DNA of 64,000 nt. It comes from Macrostomum lignano. Taxonomy: Eukaryota. The stretch lies in NCBI GenBank assembly GCA_002269645.1, contig NIVC01001178.1, positions 186,001 to 250,000 on the forward strand, in the 5' to 3' direction. This document shows, in pieces, positions 6,737 through 63,249 of the stretch (the stretch's first letter is position 1; every line of letters starts with the position of its first letter). Below the pieces are notes generated by a model. The model saw only the letters and a program-made list of their open reading frames with translations, was not told the origin of the DNA and did no database searches. The translations under genes and the position numbers were made by a program.

Positions 6737-24692
<17,956 letters not shown>

Positions 24693-28689: not shown

Positions 28690-29780
28690 CTAAGAAATCA
28701 AAGAGTTTCTAAGAAAACAGATTTTTCCGTCTCAGTTTCTAAGAAAGTGGATTCTTCCATCTCAGTTTCTAAGAAAGTGGATTCTTCCATCTTACTTTCA
28801 AAGAAAGTGGATTCTTCCATCTCAGTTTCTAAGAAAGTGGATTCTTCAAATCCCAGTTTCTAAGAAAGTGGATTCTTCCATCTCAGTCTCTAAGAAAATG
28901 GATTCTTTTATCTCAGTTTCTAAGAAAGTGGATTCTTCACCTCAGTTTCTAAGAAAATGGATTATTTCATCTCAGTTTCTAAGAAAGTGGATTCTTTTAT
29001 CTCAGTTTCTAAGAAAATGGATTCTTTTATCTCAGTTTCTAAGAAAGTGGATTCTTTTATCTCAGTTTCTAAGAAAGTGGATTCTTCCATTTCAGTTTTT
29101 AAGAAAGTGGATTCTTCCATCTCAGTTTCTAAGAAAGTGGATTCTTCTATCTTAGTTTCTAAGAAAGTGGATTCTTCCATTTCAGTTTCTAAGAAAGTGG
29201 ATTCTTTTATCTCAGTTTCTAAGAAAGTGGATTCTTTTATCTCAGTTTCTAGGAAAGTGGATTCTTCCATCTCAGTTTCTAAGAAAGTGGATTCTTCTAT
29301 CTTAGTTTCTAAGAAAGTGGATTCTTCCATTTCAGTTTCTAAGAAAGTGGATTCTTCCATTTCAGTTTCTAAGAAAGTGGATTCTTTTATCTCAGTTTCT
29401 AAGAAAGTGGATTCTTTTATCTCAGTTTCTAGGAAAGTGGATTCTTCCATCTCAGTTTCTAAGAAAGTGGATTCTTCTATCTTAGTTTCTAAGAAAGTGG
29501 ATTCTTCCATTTCAGTTTCTAAGAAAGTGGATTCTTCTATCTCAGTTTCTAAGAAAGTGGATTCTTCCGTCTCAGTTTCTAAGAAAGTGGATTCTTCTAT
29601 CTCAGTTTCTAAGAAAGTGGATTCTTTTATCTCAGTTTCTAAGAAAGTGGATTCTTTTATCTCAGTTTCTAAGAAAGTGGATTCTTTTATCTCAGTTTCT
29701 AAGAAATTGGATTTTTCCGTCTCAGTTTCTAAGAAAGTGGATTCTTTCATCTCAGTTTCTAAGAAAGTGGATTCCTACAT
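28690..29780. repeat. 30-bp array TCAGTTTCTAAGAAAGTGGATTCTTCCATC
   Basis: About 36 units. Confidence 0.97.
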
Positions 29781-31035: not shown

Positions 31036-34000
31036 CAGAATCAGCCTCAGAAAACACAGAATCAGCCTCAGAAAACACAAAATCAGCCTCAGAAACACAG
31101 AATCAGCCTCAGACACACAGAATCAGCCTCAGAGACAGAATCAGCCTCAGAGACAGAATCAGCCTCAAACACACAGAATCAGCCTTAAACACACAGAATC
31201 AGCCTCAGACACACAGAATCAGCCTCAGACACACAGAATCAGCCTCAGACACACAGAATCAGCCTCAGACACACAGAATCAGCCTCAGAGACAGAATCAG
31301 CCTCAGACACACAGAATCAGCCTCAGAGACAGAATCAGCCTCAAACACACAGAATCAGCCTCAAACACACAGAATCAGCCTCAAACACACAGAATCAGCC
31401 TCAGAGACAGAATCAGCCTCAAACACACAGAATCAGCCTCAAACACACAGAATCAGCCTCAGACACACAGAATCAGCCTCAGAGACACAGAATCAGCCTC
31501 AGAGACAGAATCAGCCTCAAACACACAGAATCAGCCTCAGACACACAGAATCAGCCTCAGAGACACAGAATCAGCCTCAGACACACAGAATCAGCCTCAG
31601 AGACACAGAATCAGCCTCAGAGACACAGAATCAGCCTCAGACACACAGAATCAGCCTCAGACACACAGAATCAGCCTCAGACACACAGAATCAGCCTCAG
31701 AGACACAGAATCAGCCTCAGACACACAGAATCAGCCTCAGAGACACAGAATCAGCCTAAGAGACACAGAATCAGCCTCAGACACACAGAATCAGCCTCAG
31801 ACACACAGAATCAGCCTCAGATACACAGAATCAGCCTCAAACACACAGAATCAGCCTCAGACACACAGAATCAGCCTCAGAGACACAGAATCAGCCTCAG
31901 AGACACAGAATCAGCCTCAGAGACACAGAATCAGCCTCAGACACACAGAATCAGCCTCAGACACACAGAATCAGCCTCAGATACACAGAATCAGCCTCAA
32001 ACACACAGAATCAGCCTCAGACACACAGAATCAGCCTCAGACACACAGAATCAGCCTCAGAGACACAGAATCAGCCTCAGACACACAGAATCAGCCTCAG
32101 AGACACAGAATCAGCCTCAAACACACCAGGTCACCTCAGTATCGTAGAGCTGCAGGTCTCTCCAGTGCATGATGTCCAACACGTGGAAGCTGCTGGTGTC
32201 CCAGATGCAGTCCAGCACTGTCAGGCCCGCCCTAAACTGGCGGCAGCCGCCAGGCAGCTCAGACGGGAAGGTCATGATGCAGCGGCCTCGACGATCGAAA
32301 GTCTTGGTGATGCCCTGCCAATTCGCGCATTGAAGCGTCAGGATGGTGGCATATTCAGTCTTAGGAGAAAGCGCCATATTGAGACAGCTGGCTTGAAACA
32401 GTAGGGGCTATAGTCAGCCTAGTGGTTACATTGTCGGACTCACGACTGAAAGGTCGGGGGTTCGATTCTCGACCCACCCACTCAGAAGAAATTGTATCCT
32501 TGAGCAAGAAACTTAACTCTGCATTAGCTGGGGTAATTGAGGGTGTGTGTGGCGACCCCCCAGTCCTTGGACTGAACAGCCGTACGCAGCCTTCAGATGC
32601 GCCGCGCAATCTGCGGCTGAGCTGTCGGTTGCACATCTGGCCCAATTAGGGCAGGTGTAATCAATTTTTAGTATTATTAATAGCTTAAAATACTAACAAA
32701 CGCAGCTATATTTTGAGTCATTGAGACAATTATGAGCACAAAAATAGCAGTCAATTATCTTAAGATTACGTTATACATGGAAGTACATCCCACCACAAGT
32801 AACCTTTCTTCAGCAACCATTTTAAAGAAAATAGAATCTTTCATCTCACTTTCTACGACACTAGAATCTTCTATATCAATTTCTAAGAAACTGAATTCTT
32901 CCATCTCGATTTCTAAGAAACTGAATTCTTCCATCTCAATTTCTAAGAAACTGAATTCTTCCATCTCATTTTCTTAAAAACTGAATTCTTCCATCTCGAT
33001 TTCTAAGAAACTGAATTCTTCCATCTCAATTTCTAAGAAACTGAATTCTTCCATCTCAATTTCTAAGAAACTGAATTCTTCCATCTCAATTTCTAAGAAA
33101 CTGAATTCTTCCATCTCAATTTCTAAGAAACTGAATTCTTCCATCTCAATTTCTAAGAAACTGAATTCTTCCATCTCAATTTCTAAGAAACTGAATTCTT
33201 CCATCTCAATTTCTAAGAAACTGAATTCTTCCATCTCAATTTCTAAGAAACTGAATTATTCCATCTCAATTTCTAAGAAACTGAATTATTCCATCTCAAT
33301 TTCTAAGAAACTGAATTCTTCCATCTCAATTTCTAAGAAACTGAATTCTTCCATCTCAATTTCTAAGAAACTGAATTCTTCCATCTCAATTTCTAAGAAA
33401 CTGAATTCTTCCATCTCAATTTCTAAGAAACTGAATTCTTCCATCTCAATTTCTAAGAAACTGAATACTTCCATCTCGATTTCTAAGAAACTGAATTCTT
33501 CCATCTCGATTTCTAAGAAACTGAATTCTTCCATCTCAATTTCTAAGAAACTGAATTCTTCCATCTCAATTTCTAAGAAACTGAATTCTTCCATCTCAAT
33601 TTCTAAGAAACTGAATTCTTCCATCTCAATTTCTAAGAAACTGAATTCTTCCATCTCAATTTCTAAGAAACTGAATTCTTCCATCTCAATTTCTAAGAAA
33701 CTGAATTCTTCCATCTCAATTTCTAAGAAACTGAATTCTTCCATCTCAATTTCTAAGAAACTGAATTTTCCATCTCAATTTCTAAGAAACTGAATTATTC
33801 CAACTCAATTTCTAAGCAACTGATTTATTCCAACTCAGTTTATAAGAAACTGATTTATTCCAACTCAGTTTATAAGAAACTGATTTATTCCAACTCAGTT
33901 TATAAAAAACTGATTTATTCCAACTCAGTTTATAAGAAACTGATTTATTCCAACTCAGTTTATAAGAAACTGATTTATTCCAACTCAGTTTATAAGAAAT

Positions 34001-34951
34001 TGATTTATTCCAACTCAGTTTATAAGAAACTGATTTATTCCAACTCAGTTTATAAGAAACTGATTTATTCCAACTCAGTTTATAAGAAACTGATTTATTC
34101 CAACTCAGTTTATAAGAAACTGATTTATTCCAACTCAGTTTATAAGAAACTGATTTATTCCAACTCAGTTTATAAGAAACTGATTTATTCCAACTCAGTT
34201 TATAAGAAACTGAATTTTCCAACTCAAATTTCTAAGAAACTGAATTTTCCATCTCAATTTCATGAAACTGGATTTTCCATCTCAATTTCTAAGAAACTGG
34301 ATTTTCCATCTCAATTTTTAAGAAACTGAATTCCTATCTTAATTTCTAAGAAAAAAGAATTTTGTTATCCTCATTTCAAAGAAAATGGACCGTAGATCTT
34401 TTTCATGTAACCTTACTAACCTTAGCAGCCACAACTAGCACTCGCTTGCCCTGCGGACAGAGTTTCAATAAGAATTCAGTTTCCAAATTATCCGGTATTT
34501 CCATCAACCATTCGGACAGCATCAGCTGATTTCGATAATTCTTGCCGGGTCGACGTTTCCGCTGAAGGCTCTCGGCTGTATCGTCGGCTGTGAGCTCCTC
34601 GGTGGCCAGAGTTTCGTTAGTATCGGCCACGGATACTAAATCATCGTCAAGATCGTCATTTTCATCGACATCTTTAGTAGTCCAATCGTCCTCGGCAAGA
34701 CGTCGGGCCAGCGACATTGCATTAAATCGACGCTGCTTTTGCAACTCCAATTCTTTTCGACGTCGTTCAACCTGATCGAGGGCCGCCCGGCCGCGGTTCT
34801 TGTACATGGACTGGTGCCGGTCCATGGCGCAACTGACGGGCACCGCGTGTCGAGTATTGGCTGCAGCCAGACTCTGACACAAATCTGAGACTGCATCGGG
34901 ATCCGATGGATGCGGCGACGACTGATTGATTGACGTCTGATTTTCAGCCAT
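29931..34951 (-). CDS. SNUPN: Snurportin-1 (m3G-cap snRNP import adaptor), 4 exons, about 384 aa; alternative in-frame ATG at 34984
   Basis: Exons 34951-34421, 32314-32135, 30883-30722, 30212-29931, all phase 0 GT-AG. IBB-like ERRRKELELQKQRR...ARRLAEDDW; YRNQLMLSEWL; CPQGKRVLVVA; LDCIW; LDIMHWR; DGVLFYH; LVGWLKPYM. Confidence 0.93.
30290..30606 (-). mobile_element. tRNA-derived SINE family B in SNUPN intron 3
   Basis: Minus strand TGGCCTAGCGCGG...GGCTCGATTCCAAGTGCAGTC...AAATTGGAATCTC...GAGGGCCAACCC. Homologous to 42470-42720. Confidence 0.65.
30980..32122. repeat. (ACAG)n followed by 18-20-bp array ACACAGAATCAGCCTCAG (SNUPN intron 2)
   Basis: Fills most of the intron. Confidence 0.97.
32401..32635 (+). 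mobile_element. SINE family A copy in SNUPN intron 1
   Basis: GCCTAGTGG...GGTTCGATTCTCGACCCA...CCTTGAGCAAGAAACTTAACTCTG...GGCGACCCCCCAGTCCTTGGACTGAACAGCCGTACGCAGCC. Internal deletion relative to the 18.6 kb copy. Confidence 0.8.
32860..34345. repeat. 30-bp array TCAATTTCTAAGAAACTGAATTCTTCCATC with a variant block at 33830-34210 (SNUPN intron 1)
   Basis: About 49 units; related to 28690-29780. Confidence 0.97.
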
Positions 34952-35522
34952 TGATTGACAGGTTTCTGAACTGTCAACTGTCATGAAATTCAAGCAACGT
35001 GAGGCAATCTCAGTAGCTTCTCTGCATGATTAAACTACCAACCAAGCTGAGTTGTCAGCAATTCAACAATCAGTCTACCAAACTATTCGATAAGAACTAA
35101 CAAAAGTATGGTTCTAATATATATATTTTAAAATCACAATAAAGTAAATATATAACGGTTTCTTTATTCCTATCCTACACAATTATAATCATAGATTACA
35201 GAAGACAATCAAATTGAAATAAAGCAACAATGACGAATGAAACTCCAAACTTCCTGTCAGGAACTAGCTAGCATATATCTCAAGATTTATTTACAATTCC
35301 TGTTTGAACAACAATTTTAAAGCATTTTAATCATTACGTTGTGCCACTGCAACAAGCGATCAATAGATTTCTTCATGCCTTATTTTGATGTCAGTGTTAA
35401 ATCACCGAAACTTTAATACCTTTTACCAGTTAAACCAATGCTGTTTTACAGATGTTTCAGAACAAAATGCCGTCATCAAGTGTTTTAAAGACTACTGGAT
35501 AGTTTAAAAAGCAACTATAGAC

Positions 35523-37415
35523 TTAGGCAATCTTCTCAGCTACAGCCTGTACAAACACTCGATCAGCTCGAACACCTTCCCGCCTATTAATTGTCTCCCT
35601 GAGCACGTAGCAGCACTGCAGCACTCGCAGACCGGCACCTTGGCACAGCGATTCCAACTCTTCAACAGTGAAGAAATACGAACAGGTGCCGTCCTGACGC
35701 ACGTAGCGCGACTCGGCTAGCTTGGTGCCTCGACCAAACCTCAGCTGGCAGTGGTCGTGCAAGCCGTAGTCTCTAATTAACAATCGACCACCCGAGCACA
35801 ACAGGGCTGCGGCATTAGCAACTGCGGTTGGCATTTCCGCGGGTTTAATAGCCGACAGTACAAACACCATAGCGGCTAAGTGAACGCTGCTTTCATTCCA
35901 ATCGTCCAGATGCCCAGCAGCCAACAAGACAAAATCAGACGAAGTTAAATCGGCGCAGAATGCTTTGAACCGATTGTCATTCTCGTCAGTTCGTTCTCGT
36001 TGCCAACGTTGCACAGCCATGTTCACTGCCCGAGGAGAGAAATCGCAAGCCAACAATCGCAGATTGGGCAGCTCAGCTAGCAGCGGCATGGCAAAGTTGC
36101 CAACGCCGCAGCCCAGCTCAGCCAGGATCAGCGGCTGGTCGCCACCATCGTTTTGCCTACCAGCCAGCTCTACAAACTCCCTCTTAGTCCAATGCCGATC
36201 GCGAAAGAATCTATCGCCATTGCGATTGTAGAATTTGTCCCAATTACGCTGCACCTCTGAGTCAATTTTATTGGCACGAAAATCGTTCACTAGTTGCTGA
36301 CTGGACAGCAACTGTTGCTCCGTTTCTGTCAGCGGACGAGGATCGCGGGTTTTATTCTGGAAAGATGACTCGTCATCAGCTTGGTCTTTTTGATGGTCAT
36401 CAGCTTCGGCCTCTGTTGGTGATGATGTCTCGCGAGTCTGGTTCTCAGAAGGCGTCTCAATCTGGACATCAGTCTGACTAGAGTCAATCTCTTTCTCTCT
36501 ATGCTGGTCGGCAGCATCAGCCTCCCTTACTGATGTAGATTCGCGAGTCTGAATCTGGAAAGATTCATCGTGTTCCTCATCATCAGCATCATGACAATCA
36601 TCGCTACGCTCTCCGCCCAGCTGCTCCTCTAACTCCTTGGCCAGCTCTCCATACGACAGGCGCCTACGGTTATCACTTTCGGCGGCCAAACTAGCAAGAT
36701 GACGCGACTGCACTTCCTTAACATCATTAGCATCGCGACAAGCAGCATAGGCGTCTAACAAGTCGGCATTGAGCTGACGAAATGCTTCACCCCAGCCGAA
36801 TCTTGATAGCACAATATCGGCATCGGAGTCCAATCCCACTATGGATAACCCAGCAGCGAATGCTTCTACGCAAGATAGATTAATCGGCTTGCCATAATTG
36901 ACAGGATTAGCAGCTACCAAGTAAGGAAGCAGTCGTTCATTGTGACACTTCATACGCGACCAGGGAGTCGATTGCAACTGTGCCCAGGAGCAATCCACTA
37001 CGGCTAGGCCTCCCCGACGAACGATTTCGGCATCGGCTGGAGAAATCTGCTCCGTAGCAACTGGCGTCAAAACTACGCCGCCAAAACGACTACCAAGTCG
37101 AAGTTCCGACACTAATCCCAGTAGGGTCAGACGACGTCCGGTGCACTTTTTCGGATCGCAATGACCTAGATCCCACATTGCTAAGGGTATGGAAAGCTTC
37201 GATTGATTCAAATCTTCGTCGCTACTCTTGCCATTGTCGGATGCAGCTGTTGCGCCTGCAATTCTATGCGCTAAGCCTTCATTATCACTGCCATTGTCAG
37301 TTTTGTCGTGTCGGTAAACCCGTCTGTCCCGATTCTGGGCTCGTTTCTGCTCAGAGGCTTTGCGTTTTCCAGCGGCGGTATTCTTTGATCTATTGCCGCG
37401 TTTCTTATTGTCCAT
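35523..37415 (-). CDS. TSR3-METTL6: Intronless 630-aa ORF: TSR3 (18S rRNA aminocarboxypropyltransferase), acidic linker, then METTL6-like tRNA m3C32 methyltransferase
   Basis: N-half: LAMWDLGHCDPKKCTG, VVDCSWA, RLLPYLVAANPVNYGKP, LSCVEAFAA, FGWGEAF. C-half: NWDKFYNRNGDRFFRDRHWTKREF, ELGCGVGN, CDFSPRAV, FVLSAI, RDYGLHDHCQLRF, YVRQDGTCSYFF, RVFVQA. No stop and no Met between the two domains. Confidence 0.92.
   Translation of the reverse strand: MDNKKRGNRSKNTAAGKRKASEQKRAQNRDRRVYRHDKTDNGSDNEGLAHRIAGATAASDNGKSSDEDLNQSKLSIPLAMWDLGHCDPKKCTGRRLTLLGLVSELRLGSRFGGVVLTPVATEQISPADAEIVRRGGLAVVDCSWAQLQSTPWSRMKCHNERLLPYLVAANPVNYGKPINLSCVEAFAAGLSIVGLDSDADIVLSRFGWGEAFRQLNADLLDAYAACRDANDVKEVQSRHLASLAAESDNRRRLSYGELAKELEEQLGGERSDDCHDADDEEHDESFQIQTRESTSVREADAADQHREKEIDSSQTDVQIETPSENQTRETSSPTEAEADDHQKDQADDESSFQNKTRDPRPLTETEQQLLSSQQLVNDFRANKIDSEVQRNWDKFYNRNGDRFFRDRHWTKREFVELAGRQNDGGDQPLILAELGCGVGNFAMPLLAELPNLRLLACDFSPRAVNMAVQRWQRERTDENDNRFKAFCADLTSSDFVLLAAGHLDDWNESSVHLAAMVFVLSAIKPAEMPTAVANAAALLCSGGRLLIRDYGLHDHCQLRFGRGTKLAESRYVRQDGTCSYFFTVEELESLCQGAGLRVLQCCYVLRETINRREGVRADRVFVQAVAEKIA
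36357..36368 (-). promoter_or_regulatory. Candidate internal splice acceptor at the start of the METTL6 domain
   Basis: Minus strand TCATCTTTCCAG|AATAAAACC. Phase 0 with the ORF (37415-36356 = 353 codons). Confidence 0.5.
36555..36566 (-). promoter_or_regulatory. Second, duplicated candidate internal acceptor in the TSR3-METTL6 linker
   Basis: Minus strand GAATCTTTCCAG|ATTCAGACT. Phase 0 (37415-36554 = 287 codons). Confidence 0.35.
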
Positions 37416-38889
37416 TGTTGTTGGTTTTTATTAGCTTTGATGCAACAATCAGAAATTTCAAATACGGTCTTAGGTTTAATAAAACTAAAGAAAGTTCATC
37501 CATCCACCTATACTAATTGTCTAAATCACTATACTAAAAATGAGTTCTTTCTCATACGTTTAATTGTTAGCAAAAACGATTCAACCGATTTTTACTTAAC
37601 TTGCACCGTTCGATCAGGAATCTTTAGGATTCAGCACCTTGTGACCTGTCATGGGAATCAATAATTTTGCTTCAGGCGCCAAAATATAGCGTATTCGGCG
37701 CCAAAATAAGCGCCTCTCTGCGACGCAAAAATGAGTTGCCTGCCTGCGGCGCCAAAATTTGCCGCTTTCAATTGTTTTGTCTATGGCCAAGCCTATAGCC
37801 TAGCAGTGGATCAAAATACTATAGTGGAGCTAGCTGAATAACTTAATAATTGCTTTTTACGCTCATACTACTGAACAGAGAGTACTTTTGCTACTCTCTA
37901 CTTTGAACAGTGTCAACTAAAAATGGTTTGAGTCAAGCTAATTATATAGTTACCATTTGTACGAGTATGTGTATATTCCACCACACTGACATAACCAATT
38001 AGCACTCGAAATTAAAATTGTGAAAAAACTATTTGGCCTATCCTACTTACTCTTGCTTTAAAGGCAAGAAACGCTAATCTCACTACTGAATAGATAATAG
38101 ATTATAGCAAATGAGTAGCATATGTAAGTGCTACTAATGAGACCTATACTAACGTTACCATATGATTTACTAAAAAAACAGAAAGATAAAATAAATAACT
38201 CAGTTTATATTTTTGCAGATAAATTTGTGCATATTATATATTGTATATGCAAATGGCAGTTAACACGAATGCGAGAAACGTTTAACATTAACTGTCATCG
38301 ATGTAAACAATTCCTGACAACAGTAAAACAATAACAGAGATTAAATTTTCGTTCTGGATACACTGGCTCGCCCATATCGCTGCCTGAGAAAGATTTACAA
38401 AGGAAATAGTAGGCATAATTACATAAGTACACATACTTTGTGTGTATATAAGAGAAGAGAAGAGTGTAAAACCTAACGATTATTATGCTACTAAAAGTAT
38501 TTAGTAAGTATATATACGCCTATATGTATAACCGCACTCGTTTGAATTTCAAAGTCCAATTAATTGAAGCACCGCAATAAACAAAACGTTTTGTGTCGAT
38601 TAGCTATTCAAATTTTTTAGTCTGAAGTAAGTATATGTACCAGAATCGATGCCTGCCTGATTAATAGAAATGATTTAAACTCAACACACCAATAAATATG
38701 CCTGATATTGCTGATATAAATAAAATGAATTAATCATCAAATTATTAGTGAATGGGCAGTAGGTGAATGGGCAGTGATTCGGTGAATCGGCAGTAGGCCG
38801 AAGTCACCGAAGGCAGCCCACAGCCCGATGAAAACGGTACCAAGAAGGCCAAGAAGCTTCGTTGAATAGTTGCTGCAGGTCTAACTCTA

Positions 38890-39152
38890 GACGTCTCTAG
38901 AACGACGAGATGTCACTGTAAAAGTCGCCAAAAAGTTGTCAAAAAGTTGTCAAAGAGTTGACCAAGAGTCAATCGAAGGTGATTTTTATCTGCGGCGGTA
39001 CAGTACAGCCGTTTCTGAGGCGTATCAGAGTCGCTGTAAAATCACTGAGTTGCGTCTAAAGCGCATCTGTGCATTTAATCAATTAAGTATTGTATTTCGC
39101 ATTGATAAAAACCCTAATTAGTCTACTTGAGTAAGTAGAAAGTTAAGCGCTA
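38890..39152 (+). repeat. Dispersed repeat ending in a hairpin; second copy on - strand at 56755-56940
   Basis: Shared blocks CTCTARAACGACGAGA, TCTGAGGCGT..AGAGTCGCT, TTTCGCATT, TTAGTCTACTTGA.T.AGTAGAAAGTTAAGC. Confidence 0.7.
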
Positions 39153-39475
39153 ACACAACAAATCTTCTACAACTCAAGAAGTGATGCACTCGTGACTCAA
39201 GCGTCGCCCCAGTTTACAATGACTCTTTAAGCGAATCTTGTCACGATAACGTTTTACGTTCAATAACGTTCAATTTTCAACTGAATGTTAGGACCACAAT
39301 AATTATTTAAGCTTTCAACTACTGAAACAAAGTAGTATAGTGTGTTTACATATCTACAACAGTAGCAACACATGGTAGAGTTAGGGCTAATTTAAACTTC
39401 AGTTGTTTTCAACGAATTTTTCGGGTGTACATGAACTAATCAGTATTGACACGCATTTCAGCAGACTGCAAGCAG

Positions 39476-42365
39476 TCACAACCAAGCTACAACAACGGTC
39501 ACATTATCGGTTGACCCGGCAGCCACAGCCATATCAATCAGAGCATTAGCAGCTGCAGCTTCGCTCTTAGTTGAGTCATCAGCTTGCATAGCAACTAGCG
39601 CGGCGGCTGCATCGTTAGGCGCCACAGCGTCCCACAGCCCATCGCTAGCCAGCACTACGCAGACATCTTTACTTCCGTCTGCATCTTCGCTGAGTTTCAA
39701 TTGCCGATGCACGACTTCCGGTTCAGGTGTTGATCCTGTAACTCCGCGATCGCCCAGACTGCGAGTGACAGCCAGCACGCCATTCAGTCTTGGCGGGTTG
39801 CCGTCCATCACGAAGCCGCCAGCAGATTCCACTCGGCTACGCTCAGCCGGGATGCTGGGCCTATGCGGCGGCGCTGTCAGCTGGGTTGCTAGGCCGTTGC
39901 TATGCACTAGCCAGGCTTCCGAGTCGCCAGCCCAGGCTACAGTTAACTGATCACCGGATAAGATGCACACCTGTTTTTTTAAGAGTGAAGACATTATACT
40001 TACATGTTTAATCCGCTACCAGCAGTTAGGCATCCCAACTTAGGATGCAACATTTCAAACAGAAAAGGATTTGCGGGGATATTTGGGATTATATAACCAT
40101 TTGTATGGATATCTGAGATTACGTAGGGACGCTTGGCATTATAAAGGGATTTTTAGGGATATCTGGGATTACATACGGATTTTGGGGGACATTTGGGATT
40201 AGATAGGGATTTGTAGGGATGTTTGGAAGTAGATGGGATGAGATATTTGGGGTTAGATAGGGATTCTTAGGATATTTGGGATTAGATACGGATTTGTAGG
40301 GATTTTTGGGATTAGGATGGATATCGGGGATAAGATAGGGATTGTAGGGATATTTGGGATTAGATAGGAATTTGTGAGGACATTTGAGATTAGGGGATTT
40401 CTAGAATATAATTAGGATTAGACAGGGATTTGTGGGGATATTTGGGATTAGATACGGATTTGTAGGGATATTTGGGATTAGGATGGATATCGGGGATAAG
40501 ATAGAGATTGTAGGGATATTTGGGATTAGATAGGGATTTGTAGGGATATTTGGGATTAGATAGGGATTTGTAGGGATATTTGGGATCAGGATGAATATCG
40601 GGATATCGGAGATTACCATAAGAAAAACACTGAAGTATTTCCGCACAGTTGGTACACAAATAAAATTTTCATGCCCCGAACAAACCGTGCAAGTGGCTCC
40701 GCCCGATGCTCCGCATTGGCTAGCGGCTTCGCCTAATTTCGCGTCGGCATCGACAAACGTTCGACGAAGTCTTTCAACCAATTCTGACTTGCTATCAGAG
40801 TCGCTATGAGAAGAATAAGACAGGAACAATGGCAGCAGATAGGAAGCGGCCAAGTCGGCTCCGTCGCTGCCCCCGTGACCGTCCAGAACGGCCAAGAAAT
40901 TCGCCTGGCTATTGGCGTCCGGCGAGAATGCCGACACCAATAGGCGATCTTCATTGCGTCGGCCGCGATTTTTTGCGCTTGCCTGTTTGTTTGACGAGTT
41001 TGAGAGACTTTTCTTTCATAATTTAATCTCTAGTCCAATTCTTATGCTTGTTTGGGATACTGTCTTAACCTCTGTTCTACCCCAGTTTGATACTCTGTTC
41101 TACCCCAATTCGATACTCTGTTCTACCCCAATTCGATACTCTGTTCTACCCCAATTCGATCATCTGTTCTACCCCAATTTGATCATCTGTTCTACCCCAA
41201 TTTGATCATCTGTTCTACCCCAATTCGATACTCTGTTCTACCCCAATTCGATACTCTGTTCTACCCCAATTTGATCATCTGTTCTACCCCAATTCGATAC
41301 TCTGTTCTACCCCAATTCGATACTCTGTTCTACCCCAATTCGATACTCTGTTCTACCCCAATTCGATACTCTGTTCTACCCCAATTCGATACTCTGTTCT
41401 ACCCCAATTTGATCATCTGTTCTACCCCAATTCGATACTCTGTTCTACCCCAATTTGATCACCTGTTCTACCCTAATTTGATCACCTGTTCTACCCCAAT
41501 TTGATCATCTGTTCTACCCCAATTTGATCATCTGTTCTACCCCAATTTGATCATCTGTTCTACCCCAATTTGATCATCTGTTCTACCCCAATTCGATCAT
41601 CTGTTCTACCCCAATTCGATACTCTGTTCTACCCCAATTCGATACTCTGTTCTACCCCAATTTGATCATCTGTTCTACCCTATTTTGGTCATCTGTTGTA
41701 CCCCGATTTGATCCTCTGTTTTCCCCATTTTAATATGTTATCGATCATAGATCCATTCTATATTTTTCCATATCCAATCGCTTGTTTACAGATATTCTGT
41801 TCTACAGCTCTCTACTTAATATTACCAACGCACAAAACCGAAGGCTCACATGAGACACAAGCCGAGCGCAGCCACGCCTAACCACTGTTGGCGCATCAAC
41901 ACTATCATGTCTGGGCGTTGCCTTATCGCCATTATCATCATCATTGCTACTAATGTTTCTTTCTTCCATGTCTCCAAGGCAACTGCATAATTTCTCTTTG
42001 GCATCACAGTCGGCCAGCTCGCGAACAACTTCGCCAACTAATCTCTGAACAGCTCGATACTCAGGCTTAGCAGTTTCATTATCTTGGCTAATAAAGCGAT
42101 TAGTGAACTGAGATCCAAGCAAATATTGCATTAGCTTAGCTTGAGCTCTCCAACCCATTGTTGAATCATTATTGGCATCGGATTGCACTACTTGCAATAG
42201 GTAAGGCGTCAATAAGTCTAGAATTTGTTTAGCAAAATAGCATTGAGCAGAATGAGCATCGGCGAAGCATTGAAATGGAGGTCGAGACACTGCGGACGGA
42301 TCAGCAAGAGATTCAACTGCCTGTTGGGCTGCTGAGACAATCAACTCTGATGGACAGCTTGACAT
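39476..42365 (-). CDS. PP2C/PPM-family phosphatase, PPM1E/PPM1F-like, 3 exons, about 443 aa
   Basis: Exons 42365-41826, 40982-40686, 39970-39476, all phase 0. KNRGRRNEDR, AVLDGHGG, GATCT, AWAGDS, HRPSIPAERSRVESAGG, RLNGVLAVTRSLGD, LASDGLWD, GSTDNVTVVV. Extra N-terminal region as in PPM1E/F. Confidence 0.88.
40070..40615. repeat. Degenerate ~30-bp array GGGATATTTGGGATTAGATA... (PP2C intron 2)
   Basis: Tandem copies. Confidence 0.88.
41070..41710. repeat. 23-bp array TTCTACCCCAATTCGATACTCTG (PP2C intron 1)
   Basis: Tandem copies. Confidence 0.95.
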
Positions 42366-61311: not shown

Positions 61312-63249
61312 TCATTCGTTCGGATTGAGTTTATAAGCCACCAAAGAGTCCACCTTGTGAATTGAGGTGGTAAACGATTTCAATTTCACTTCGACAGAAT
61401 TGGACACCAGCTGAGGTCCAGTATCGGCCCATTCGCCGCTGGGCAATTCCGTGTTCTTGTCGCAGTAAATCAGCAGTTCAAAACTGCCTGTAATTTTCAA
61501 AAAAAAAATCCTTCAGCTTAACAAACTATTTAGTTAAACTCCGAGACAACAAAGCAAATTAAAAAAACGACAAACTTACACTGGAAATCCAGAGCCGGTA
61601 GAAAGGTGACGCTGGCCACAATTTGGCGGATAACATCGGCGATGTCTTTCTTCACTTGCTTCTCGTCTTTCTCTGCCACCATTCTATTTTATGAAAAATT
61701 GGTTCAAACTACTTATAGTGGATAAGTAAAAATATCGGATTTTTGATTGAAAAAATCACACCGGCTTACTGAAAGTAGTATAAAAGACAACCTCAATACT
61801 CACGGTTCATCGGACTTAGCAGATTTGTCGCATTTAATGTCGAACTGCCAGCGTTCGACCACTTCCTGGGTGGACACTCGACGAATAACAAGCACCAGCT
61901 TCTCAATCACCAGGTCGCTGAGCCATTCTGAGTGGTTTTTTACAATAAAATCTTTAGGTGTTTATTTCAGGCGTGAAGGACGGAAACATGTACAGTCATC
62001 TCTGGAGTTTTTAGGATCTGGGAGACTGGCCCAGCAACTGAGGAGCTGGGAGGCTGGCCCAGCAACTGAGGAGCTGGGAGGCTGGCCCAGCAACTGAGGA
62101 GCTGGGAGGCTGGCCCAGCAACTGCGGATCTGGGAGGCTGGCTTAGCAACTGGGGATCTGGGAGGCTGGCCCAGCAACTGAGGATCTGGGAGGCTGGCCC
62201 AGCAACTGAGGATCTGGGAGGCTGGCCCAGCAACTGAGGATCTGGGAGGCTGGCCCAGCAACTGAGGAGCTGGGAGGCTGGCCCAGCAACTGCGGATCTG
62301 GGAGGCTGGCTTAGCAACTGGGGATCTGGGAGGCTGGCCCAGCAACTGAGGATCTGGGAGGCTGGCCCAGCAACTGAGGATCTGGGAGGCTGGCCCAGCA
62401 ACTGAGGATCTGGGAGGCTGGCCCAGCAACTGAGGAGCTGGGAGGCTGGCCCAGCAACTGCGGATCTGGGAGGCTGGCTTAGCAACTGGGGATCTGGGAG
62501 GCTGGCCCAGCAACTGAGGATCTGGGAGGCTGGCCCAGCAACTGAGGATCTGGGAGGCTGGCCCAGCAACTGAGGATCTGGGAGGCTGGCCCAGCAACTG
62601 AGGATCTGGGAGGCTGGCCCAGCAACTGAGGATCTGGGAGGCTGGCCCAGCAACTGAGGATCTGGCAGGCTGTCTGCCCAGCAACTGAGGATCTGGGAGG
62701 CTGGCCCAGCAACTGAGGATCTGGCAGGCTGTCTGCCCAGCAACTGAGGATCGGGGAGGCTGGCCCAGCAACTGACACTCTGGGAGGCTGGCCCAGCAGC
62801 TGAGGATCTGGGAGGCTGGCCCAGCAACTGAGGATCGGGGAGGCTGGCCCAGCAACTGACACTCTGGGAGACTGGCCCAGCAGCTGAGGATCTGGGAGGC
62901 TGGCCCAGCAACTGAGGATCTGGCAGGCTGGCCCAGCAACTGAGGATCTGGGAGGCTGTCCTAGTAACTGAGGATCTGGGAGGCTAGAACAGCAACAGGA
63001 TCTGGGAGGCTGGCGCAGCAACTGAGGATCTAGGGTGGGGGTGCTCAACAACAAAACTTGGGGTGACAGTTGATCTATTCGATACAGCTAGAAGTAACTC
63101 ACGCTTCACTTGTTCCAATATCTTGATCAAATAGGCCTTAAGCTTCTCATCCGATGTCACAAGAACAGTGAGGCCATACTTCTGCTCAAACGAAAAGGAT
63201 TCGCTTGGATAAATGCCACGTTGGTAAAGGATGGAATTCACTGCATAAT
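61312..63249 (-). CDS. MAD2L1: Mitotic spindle checkpoint protein MAD2 (HORMA); exons 63249-63103, 61927-61804, 61683-61580, 61487-61312; first exon not found in window
   Basis: VNSILYQRGIYPSESF..QKYGLTVLV, KLVLVI, ERWQFDI, IRQIVASVTFLP, CSFELLIY, GPQLVSNSVEVKLKSFTTSIHKVDSLVAYK. Phases 1, 1, 2, 1 are consistent. Confidence 0.95.
62010..63045. repeat. 28-bp array CTGGGAGGCTGGCCCAGCAACTGAGGAT (MAD2 intron)
   Basis: Reverse complement of the array at 1-612. Confidence 0.97.

Follow-up and report, generated by a model that had tools for sequence, protein, structure and literature searches.

Two RNA-modifying enzyme domains, TSR3 and METTL6, in one reading frame of Macrostomum lignano: a probable old flatworm fusion

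Can two enzymes that modify quite different RNAs, one in the ribosome and the other among the transfer RNAs, be made as a single polypeptide, and how old would such an arrangement be? The question is raised by a stretch of 64,000 nucleotides from the flatworm Macrostomum lignano (assembly GCA_002269645.1, contig NIVC01001178.1), which is the whole of the DNA analysed and is called the window below. Here one open reading frame (ORF) encodes a TSR3 domain followed by a METTL6 domain. TSR3 transfers the aminocarboxypropyl (acp) group of S-adenosylmethionine (SAM) to 18S rRNA, giving the modified residue m1acp3-psi. METTL6 makes 3-methylcytidine at position 32 (m3C32) of tRNA-Ser. Both enzymes are well understood singly; what is unusual is to see them physically joined, across a whole phylum. 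Very probably we are dealing with a single M. lignano gene, coding for a polypeptide of about 70 kDa in which two independent SAM-dependent RNA-modifying enzymes are carried on a linker made of the TSR3 tail, and this gene belongs to an old flatworm fusion.

The frame is by far the longest of the window, the runner-up having 363 codons. Its product is identical to the M. lignano protein P0001 from the same contig, and no in-frame stop is found between residues 1 and 630. Its parts, all on the reverse strand, are as follows.

35523..37415 (-), fused TSR3-METTL6 ORF, ATG at 37415-37413, TAA at 35525-35523, 630 residues, intron-free
37188..37415 (-), N-terminal tail, residues 1-76, basic, poorly conserved, predicted disordered
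36699..37187 (-), TSR3 catalytic domain (18S rRNA aminocarboxypropyltransferase), residues 77-239, from Pfam, PDB and Foldseek
36378..36698 (-), TSR3 C-terminal helices and acidic disordered tail acting as linker, residues 240-346, with neither Met nor stop
35544..36377 (-), METTL6 (tRNA m3C32 methyltransferase) domain, residues 347-624, with m3C-specific RNA-binding elements and a Rossmann core

The first half is a complete TSR3, as its two Pfam domains are both present in full: Fer4_RLI (PF04068) at residues 77-109 (E 9e-13, 48.2 bits for a cut-off of 23) and Ribo_biogen_C (PF04034) at residues 114-239 (positions 1-126 of the 127 of the profile, E 4e-49, 165.9 bits for a gathering cut-off of 29.9). 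In a search of the PDB sequences, residues 81-238 match the archaeal Tsr3 structures 5ap8 and 5apg (E 3e-23 and 6e-21). Submitted to Foldseek, the domain as modelled by AlphaFold2 falls on 5ap8_C with a target template modelling score (TM-score) of 0.89 and a root-mean-square deviation of 2.1, its predicted local distance difference test score (pLDDT) being mostly 82-96. The residues that matter in experiments are S62, E111 and W114 of the yeast enzyme (W73 in VdTsr3), together with R60, K65 and R131, and the roles assigned in Tsr3 are those of a tryptophan in the SAM pocket, an acidic residue three positions before it, a serine or threonine that holds the acp carboxylate and basic residues that bind RNA (PMC4872110). 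All of these features that were checked (pocket tryptophan, acidic residue, serine or threonine, basic residues) are present in the window protein. The alignment places T92 on VdTsr3 T19 and yeast S62, D141 and W144 on yeast E111 and W114, and R161 on yeast R131. In a set of 26 fused proteins, described below, the stretch D141-C-S-W144 is invariant, while C91, G93, R94 and R161 are invariant or nearly so. The likeness to TSR3 as known from yeast, from human and from the structures 5AP8 and 5APG thus covers both complete Pfam domains, the fold, the DCSW motif, the serine or threonine, the basic residues and even the acidic C-terminal tail. The M. lignano tail differs from that of a stand-alone TSR3 in having been lengthened by in-frame duplications and in lacking a stop: it continues straight into the second enzyme. 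Yeast Tsr3 is still active without its 76 C-terminal residues (PMC4872110), so that an appendage at this end of the protein is plausible.

The second half is recognized by the class I methyltransferase models of Pfam at residues 426-600, and the PDB search is more specific: residues 347-624 match human METTL6 (8owx, 7ezg, 8p7b) with E of about 1e-63, nearly from the first residue of the chain. The alignment to 8owx (its residues 3-268, E 1.3e-63) covers the m3C-specific N-terminal element, the internal insertion and the beta-hairpin, and Foldseek gives a target TM-score of 0.87 with 8p7b_A. The familiar motifs follow one another along the chain: NWDKFY at 391, FFRDRHW at 403, (E)LGCGVGN at 434, ACDFS at 456, FVLSA at 518, RDYGLHDH at 548, YVRQDG at 571 and DRVFVQ at 618, as well as NDF. 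Most are invariant, or nearly so, in the 26 fused proteins, where the near-invariant columns are F379, W392, D393, F403/F404, D406-R-H-W409, G435-N440, D458, F518-A522, Y550, R573, R619 and F621. Experiments have pointed to F32, which contacts the seryl-tRNA synthetase (SerRS), and to W45, F57, R60, motif I, D110/F111, F158, Y190 and R213 of METTL6 as important residues (PMC11479938). In the alignment with the human protein F379 stands for F32, W392 for W45, F404 and R407 for F57 and R60, D458 and F459 for D110 and F111, F518 for F158, Y550 for Y190 and R573 for R213; motif I and R619/F621 are present too. Which member of the family is this? Among the best 120 matches of a search with this half, the named ones are all METTL6 and none is METTL2 or METTL8. 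By its best hits, it would be a METTL6 orthologue, and not METTL2 or METTL8. It shares with human METTL6 (7EZG, 7F1E, 8OWX, 8P7B) an alignment over nearly the full length, WDxFY, FFxDRHW, motif I, the D-F acidic loop, the residues of the C32 pocket and the SerRS-contact phenylalanine, and it differs in having no start codon of its own and in standing behind an N-terminal extension of 350 residues.

The AlphaFold2 model, built on the 26 fused homologues, shows two confident domains, at about residues 72-250 and 360-630, separated by residues 268-358 with a pLDDT below 50, as also found for residues 1-71. The best structural matches in Foldseek are METTL6 and Tsr3 structures. The predicted TM-score of the whole (pTM) is 0.43, a low value that would be expected of two domains on a flexible tether. 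Conservation follows the same partition: mean identity to the other fused proteins is 0.51 in the TSR3 core and 0.40-0.42 in METTL6, but 0.06 over residues 271-352, where 54% of the alignment cells are gaps, and 0.08 (against the 25 others) over the N-terminal residues 1-75, with an isoelectric point (pI) of 10.15. Pfam, PDB search and AlphaFold2 with Foldseek therefore agree on what a preliminary description, made from the letters of the DNA, had seen: one stop-free frame of 630 codons with a complete TSR3, an acidic linker and a complete METTL6. Its remark that no methionine precedes the second domain also holds, as there is none between M155 and M443.

Where does the linker come from? It is a disordered acidic segment of some 80-110 residues; its residues 271-352 comprise 28 D or E for 6 K or R, with a pI of 4.05. 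It had been described simply as a linker. It is not a new spacer: in a HMMER scan the stand-alone TSR3 of Nucella extends over residues 22-348 of the query, across the linker stretch, so that TSR3's own acidic C-terminal tail is the counterpart, in the alignment, of most of the linker. METTL6 homology starts directly after this tail, the human sequence MASLQRKGLQAR aligning with ESSFQNKTRDPR. The tail has grown, however, in M. lignano. The distance from DCSW to NWD is 250 residues, as compared to 153-236 in most fused proteins, and only P0024 from Paragonimus kellicotti has a longer one (288). A seeded repeat finder accounts for the growth.

36343..36571 (-), degenerate duplicated segments within the linker, all in frame, 111 and 87 nucleotides apart

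One family of duplications (D1) has 66 nucleotides, 71% identity and a spacing of 111; the other (D2) has three copies, with spacings of 87 and 111. All spacings of linker repeats are multiples of 3. The repeated unit takes in the start of the METTL6-homologous segment, as may be seen in DESFQIQTRE, SENQTRE and DESSFQNKTRD. Tandem Repeats Finder reported nothing in the linker, the duplications being visible only with the seeded method. As read from these alignments and repeats, the M. lignano linker is a TSR3 tail lengthened by in-frame duplications.

Does this continuous frame correspond to a continuous messenger? At three M. lignano loci the ORF runs through the junction without a break. Two near-identical GenBank proteins, PAA86104.1 and PAA65574.1, fall in the same 90%-identity cluster as the window protein and are encoded on other contigs, that is, at two further loci; the cluster also includes a UniParc entry of 630 residues. 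Only a few substitutions distinguish its members from the window protein, and their frame is open throughout. M. lignano is described in one study as a hidden polyploid (PMC10468722), and this may be the reason for the three copies. The GenBank annotation of the species is a genome-guided transcriptome, in which genes have been cut at the trans-splice (spliced leader, SL) and poly(A) sites observed experimentally (PMC5730564); this procedure left the ORF uncut at both loci that have a GenBank model. Other flatworms bring evidence of another kind. In Cichlidogyrus, exon 2 alone spans residues 205-417 and crosses the junction. In the genomic contig L004, a single exon, preceded by CAG and followed by GTAAGT, extends from KLAMWDF, where the TSR3 core begins, as far as the METTL6 core. 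The related trematode and cestode genes are made of many coding exons (9 in Schistosoma, 7 in Mesocestoides, 7 in Spirometra), so that two contigs with an uninterrupted fused ORF, L006 (561 residues) and L007 (SRR5929441, 628 residues), must be spliced mRNAs spanning both enzymes. L007 even retains its leader: its 5' end is GCCCTGTATATTAGTGCATG, the last 20 nucleotides of the published Fasciola SL, placed before the fused ORF, and its protein clusters with that of Fasciolopsis buski. The fasciolid fused gene is thus SL-trans-spliced at its 5' end. The fusion is transcribed as one mRNA, as the trematode cDNA and the transcriptome-based fused annotation of M. lignano show, and with three open loci, crossing exons and spliced cDNAs it is real, as had been proposed at first sight. 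In nucleotides 1-35 of L007, the ATG of the leader is in frame with the annotated start, 15 nucleotides upstream of it, with no stop in between (ATG CCG TAC CTT GTT ATG); to judge from these codons, translation could begin at the leader AUG, adding MPYLV to the protein.

How widespread is the arrangement? A word-indexed search yielded some 28 proteins with TSR3 and a methyltransferase in one chain, and all those that have a name come from flatworms, about 25 named species. They comprise cestodes (Schistocephalus, Spirometra, Sparganum, Mesocestoides, Anoplocephala), trematodes (seven species of Schistosoma, Trichobilharzia, Heterobilharzia, Calicophoron, Fasciola, Fasciolopsis, Echinostoma, Opisthorchis, Clonorchis, Paragonimus) and a monogenean (Cichlidogyrus). 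TSR3 and METTL6 are separate in molluscs, annelids, brachiopods, echinoderms, chordates, fungi and plants. An exhaustive HMMER scan of 1.84 billion representatives retrieved six clusters matching both halves: the four named ones are all flatworms, and P0009 and P0029 are the remaining two, P0009 grouping with trematodes in neighbour-joining (NJ) trees. Among the named sequences of this search, the same order of domains was not found outside flatworms. The preliminary description knew of no such fusion and took it to be specific to a lineage. The sequences were in fact already in databases, for about 25 named flatworm species including M. lignano itself, a situation that the description had itself listed as a refutation, and the lineage is the phylum: the confinement to flatworms stands, the peculiarity to this genome does not. 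In the searchable library we found no paper describing the fusion; the seven papers there that mention both genes concern neither flatworms nor a fusion, and the supplements of the flatworm SL paper mention neither TSR3 nor METTL6. Entries from parasitic flatworms are usually called '18S rRNA aminocarboxypropyltransferase', most database entries in general naming TSR3 or METTL6 only, and a correction is due.

Twenty-six of the fused proteins can be aligned end to end, with 37-45% identity to the window protein. In the NJ tree of the METTL6 halves, all fused proteins come together with a support of 87, along with one stand-alone marine sequence. Macrostomorpha are the sister group of the remaining rhabditophorans, and with a single origin this would place the fusion at or before the rhabditophoran ancestor. 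Most likely, it arose once, before Macrostomorpha and Neodermata separated, and none of the flatworm lineages sampled has lost it. The M. lignano gene has the same order of domains and the same junction as the models of parasitic flatworms (Schistosoma, Fasciola, Clonorchis, Paragonimus, Spirometra, Mesocestoides, Cichlidogyrus); it differs from them by the absence of introns (they have 2-8), by its core spacing, the second longest, and by a less diverged METTL6 half. The latter resembles the parasitic-flatworm fusions less than it does the METTL6 of amphioxus, nemerteans and molluscs, where the enzyme stands alone (45-49% identity), and the neodermatan orthologues differ from stand-alone METTL6 by large insertions in the Rossmann core. 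No stand-alone TSR3 or METTL6 of a flatworm appears among the listed matches; the best 120 of the METTL6-half search also lack P0001 and the neodermatan fusions, so that diverged stand-alone copies in Neodermata remain compatible with the search.

A few related sequences deserve mention here. A stand-alone METTL6 from the sea, P0128, falls inside the clade of fused METTL6 halves. It is encoded without introns on marine metagenome contigs L011-L013 (ENA, TARA). Among METTL6-only sequences it comes nearest to the M. lignano half (49-51% identity), and it has an acidic N-terminal stretch of its own. It is not a fragment of another fusion, as a TGA stands one codon before its ATG and no TSR3 lies upstream. 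L004 (SRR33002330) and P0021 (UniParc UPI00060CFE81) are two related fused proteins; the position of L004 in trees is unstable, and its linker is very acidic, with runs of E and D. A methyltransferase gene located 4.5 kb downstream of the Mesocestoides fusion gene was considered and is not METTL6-like.

Some observations weigh against an old, bifunctional fusion. Flatworm annotations are known to merge the genes of operons into chimeric models (PMC12582326), and for this reason the multi-exon neodermatan gene models are by themselves no proof of fusion; in M. lignano, the support consists of genomic ORFs and of a transcriptome-based annotation. The NJ tree of the TSR3 half does not resolve the group (support 6), so that a single origin has to rest on the shared architecture and on the METTL6-half clade, which takes in the stand-alone P0128. 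The N-terminal helices of METTL6 contact SerRS (PMC11479938), and an N-terminal appendage of 350 residues might interfere with this contact. Finally, the METTL6 half is incomplete in some isoform models of Schistosoma: P0031, from Schistosoma rodhaini, is devoid of the WDRFY...FFK segment and of the C-terminal third of METTL6, while P0265-P0267, from S. japonicum, have only 470-475 residues. If real, these isoforms would be products with TSR3 activity only. How much do these points matter? The chimeric models, combined with a linker that is repetitive and of low complexity, might make one think that adjacent genes, or an operon, look fused through an assembly or sequencing error in the linker or through chimeric gene prediction. 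This is next to inconceivable, and we have rejected it: an error would have had to leave the frame open at three distinct loci of M. lignano, a few substitutions apart, with repeat spacings that always respect the reading frame, while the junction is spanned by continuous exons in Cichlidogyrus and L004, two other genomes, and by two spliced cDNA contigs (L006 and L007), and no methionine is available to start a second protein. The shortened Schistosoma models, P0031 with its missing essential METTL6 motifs in particular, would rather evoke a protein in which one half has decayed and is kept as a scaffold, leaving a single activity. We see this as very improbable: among the 26 fused proteins, the residues for catalysis, SAM binding and RNA binding vary little or not at all in either half, identity in the two cores contrasts with that of the linker, as given above, and the listed matches offer no stand-alone flatworm TSR3 or METTL6.

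There remains the matter of how the gene came to its present form, which the intron-free state of the M. lignano copy had been taken to reveal. Exon mapping gives 8 introns in Schistosoma, 6 in Mesocestoides, 6 in Spirometra and 2 in Cichlidogyrus, versus none here, and M. lignano genes have 4.9 introns on average (PMC5730564). Trematodes and cestodes have introns in common in the TSR3 core (phase 0), after SYxxxYAxLD (phase 2), in the linker (phase 1) and at two METTL6 places. The phase-2 intron of the METTL6 core is common to the four mapped flatworm genes, and L004 has a donor, GTAAGT after TC, at the matching place. Beyond flatworms, two introns of the TSR3 half match those of Lingula TSR3 in phase, within 1-4 alignment columns (262/263 for phase 1; 285-290/286 for phase 2), while one intron of the METTL6 half is 1 nucleotide from an intron common to Owenia and Lingula. 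Such matches are suggestive, not clean; they make it more likely that the introns are ancestral and were lost in M. lignano than the reverse. Because fused orthologues have 2-8 introns, the absence of introns is an affair separate from the fusion event. It is a feature of the M. lignano copy and says nothing about how the fusion arose, contrary to what had been suggested at first.

The linker holds a second kind of clue. The M. lignano SL ends in ATG (...TTATTGCATG), with an acceptor motif [T/C]TNCAG (PMC8629364), and the sequence TCTTTCCAG, which fits this motif, is found at two places of the 64-kb window, both of them in the linker; the SL sequence itself is absent from the window.

36555..36563 (-), first TCTTTCCAG acceptor-like motif, ending codon Q287, with codon I288 next, phase 0
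36357..36365 (-), second TCTTTCCAG motif, ending codon Q353, with N354 next, phase 0, at about the start of canonical METTL6

Two histories may be weighed from these introns and motifs. In the first, the M. lignano copy is a version of an intron-bearing fused ancestor processed by reverse transcriptase or, with the polarity inverted, an ancestral intronless retro-insertion into which Neodermata later gained introns. The total lack of introns in a gene whose orthologues have 8, 6, 6 and 2, in a species where several per gene are the rule, together with the approximate matches to Lingula TSR3 and to Owenia and Lingula METTL6, speaks for it. These matches, however, lie in poorly aligned segments of low complexity, and in METTL6 there is no intron whose position is exactly that of one in the outgroups. 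No run of A is visible in the 220 nucleotides after the stop (target-site duplications were not searched for), and no intron-bearing parent copy was seen, the other two loci encoding collinear proteins, in a search that fell short of the whole genome; a gradual loss of introns would have the same outcome. We thus regard a retro-copy as quite possible, a shade short of probable. The second history would have the locus produce, besides the fused mRNA, another messenger in which the SL is trans-spliced to a TCTTTCCAG site of the linker, the ATG of the leader starting a stand-alone METTL6, putatively M followed by residues 354-630 (278 residues, about 31 kDa); the site would then be a relic, or a part still in use, of an ancestral TSR3-METTL6 operon that lost its upstream stop. 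Junction reads are predicted that join the leader end ...TTATTGCATG or ...CAATTTATTGCATG to AATAAAACCCGC or ATTCAGACTCGC. The idea has its attractions, since it would explain a METTL6 part deprived of its own methionine: the leader and its acceptor motif are documented and about 15% of M. lignano genes are in operons (PMC8629364), internal SL acceptor sites and acceptors shared by cis- and trans-splicing are documented in parasitic flatworms (PMC12582326), both copies of the motif sit in the linker, each followed by a phase-0 codon, and the 9-mer is conserved 9/9 in two repeat copies otherwise 77% identical. But the two copies come from one duplication and are not independent, and at least two matches were found in 33 of 100 shuffles of the window, which makes their number not unusual. 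The glutamine codon probably reflects coding conservation, as human METTL6 has SLQ, Owenia IQK and the marine P0128 GFQ at the matching place. The TBONE annotation, which cuts at peaks of SL reads, left the gene unsplit at both loci with a GenBank model, the protein collection holds no METTL6-only protein from M. lignano, and in trematodes and cestodes the intron of the linker has phase 1, so that the leader ATG would be out of frame there. The second messenger, and with it, taken jointly, the operon relic, is therefore unlikely. Were it true, the locus would yield METTL6 both free and fused to TSR3, and would show, in a living species, a stage halfway between operon and fused gene.

An SL-resolved bicistronic operon in the ordinary sense is not what this locus is: with no in-frame stop over the 630 residues, there is one cistron. 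It resembles the SL-resolved operons of flatworms (PMC8629364, PMC12582326) by its same-strand neighbours, by acceptor-like motifs in the linker and by an ATG-bearing leader, and differs from them in that neither a stop nor a poly(A) site separates the coding parts and the frame is open. An operon is a possible origin for the fusion.

We come back to the two-enzyme fusion and to what it would do. By homology, the TSR3 half, with its SPOUT-like fold, would act late in the cytoplasmic maturation of the 40S subunit, transferring the acp group to the hypermodified pseudouridine of 18S rRNA, while the METTL6 half, with a Rossmann core and m3C-specific RNA-binding elements, would make m3C32 on tRNA-Ser together with SerRS. 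The two would be joined via the disordered acidic tail of TSR3, duplicated in frame in M. lignano. From the conserved residues we infer that both activities are retained. The halves would act independently on their flexible tether, and the benefit of the fusion would be obligatory co-expression and not new chemistry. 'Rosetta-stone' fusions are often read as the mark of a functional link. A link between ribosome maturation and tRNA modification, which had been proposed for this gene, is conjecture; if real, it would couple the final event of 40S maturation in the cytoplasm, close to the P site, to a modification of the anticodon loop of tRNA-Ser. The fusion is a test case, asking for real 40S/tRNA-Ser coupling versus mere co-expression. 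In a lineage with an AUG-bearing SL, splitting such a gene again should be easy, yet the fusion was kept. Common to schistosomes, liver flukes and tapeworms and not found outside flatworms, the architecture also lends two enzymes that are otherwise conserved a parasite-specific trait.

A word should be said of the surroundings of the gene. A PP2C ORF at 39476-39994 (-), matching only positions 106-255 of the 255 of the profile, is a last exon that ends 2 kb upstream of the fusion gene. On the downstream side, the ORF at 34403-34993 (-) covers only the start of snurportin and represents the initial coding exon of snurportin-1; it begins about 0.54 kb beyond the stop of the fusion gene, and the snurportin gene occupies more than 2.4 kb for a product of 394 residues. 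Both neighbours are on the same strand as the fusion gene and both are split, in line with the multi-exon neighbours first described. Operon calling in M. lignano uses a distance limit of 1 kb and asks that the downstream gene be SL-trans-spliced too (PMC8629364); the gap between the fusion gene and snurportin (about 0.54 kb) is within this limit.

From about 34400 to 40100, where the fusion gene and the flanking exons of its neighbours lie, there is no minisatellite above the score threshold. The stretches 1-34353 and 40133-63031 have dozens of minisatellite arrays with periods of 7-48 nucleotides, each 0.2-2.3 kb long, and these arrays are responsible for many long ORFs on both strands and for extreme GC and AT skews. 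Some of the units are related to one another. The 28-nucleotide unit CTCAGTTGCTGGGCCAGCCTCCCAGATC at 1-610 is the reverse complement of the unit at 62013-63031, and the 21-nucleotide unit TGAGTGCCTGCGGCGCCAAAA at 7330-7809 is approximately that of the unit at 20999-21702. The arrays at 28704-29774 and 32825-34353 have related 30-nucleotide units containing ...GAATTCTTCCATCTC... (or ...GGATTCTTCCATCTC...), and the second of them lies inside the snurportin gene, presumably in an intron.

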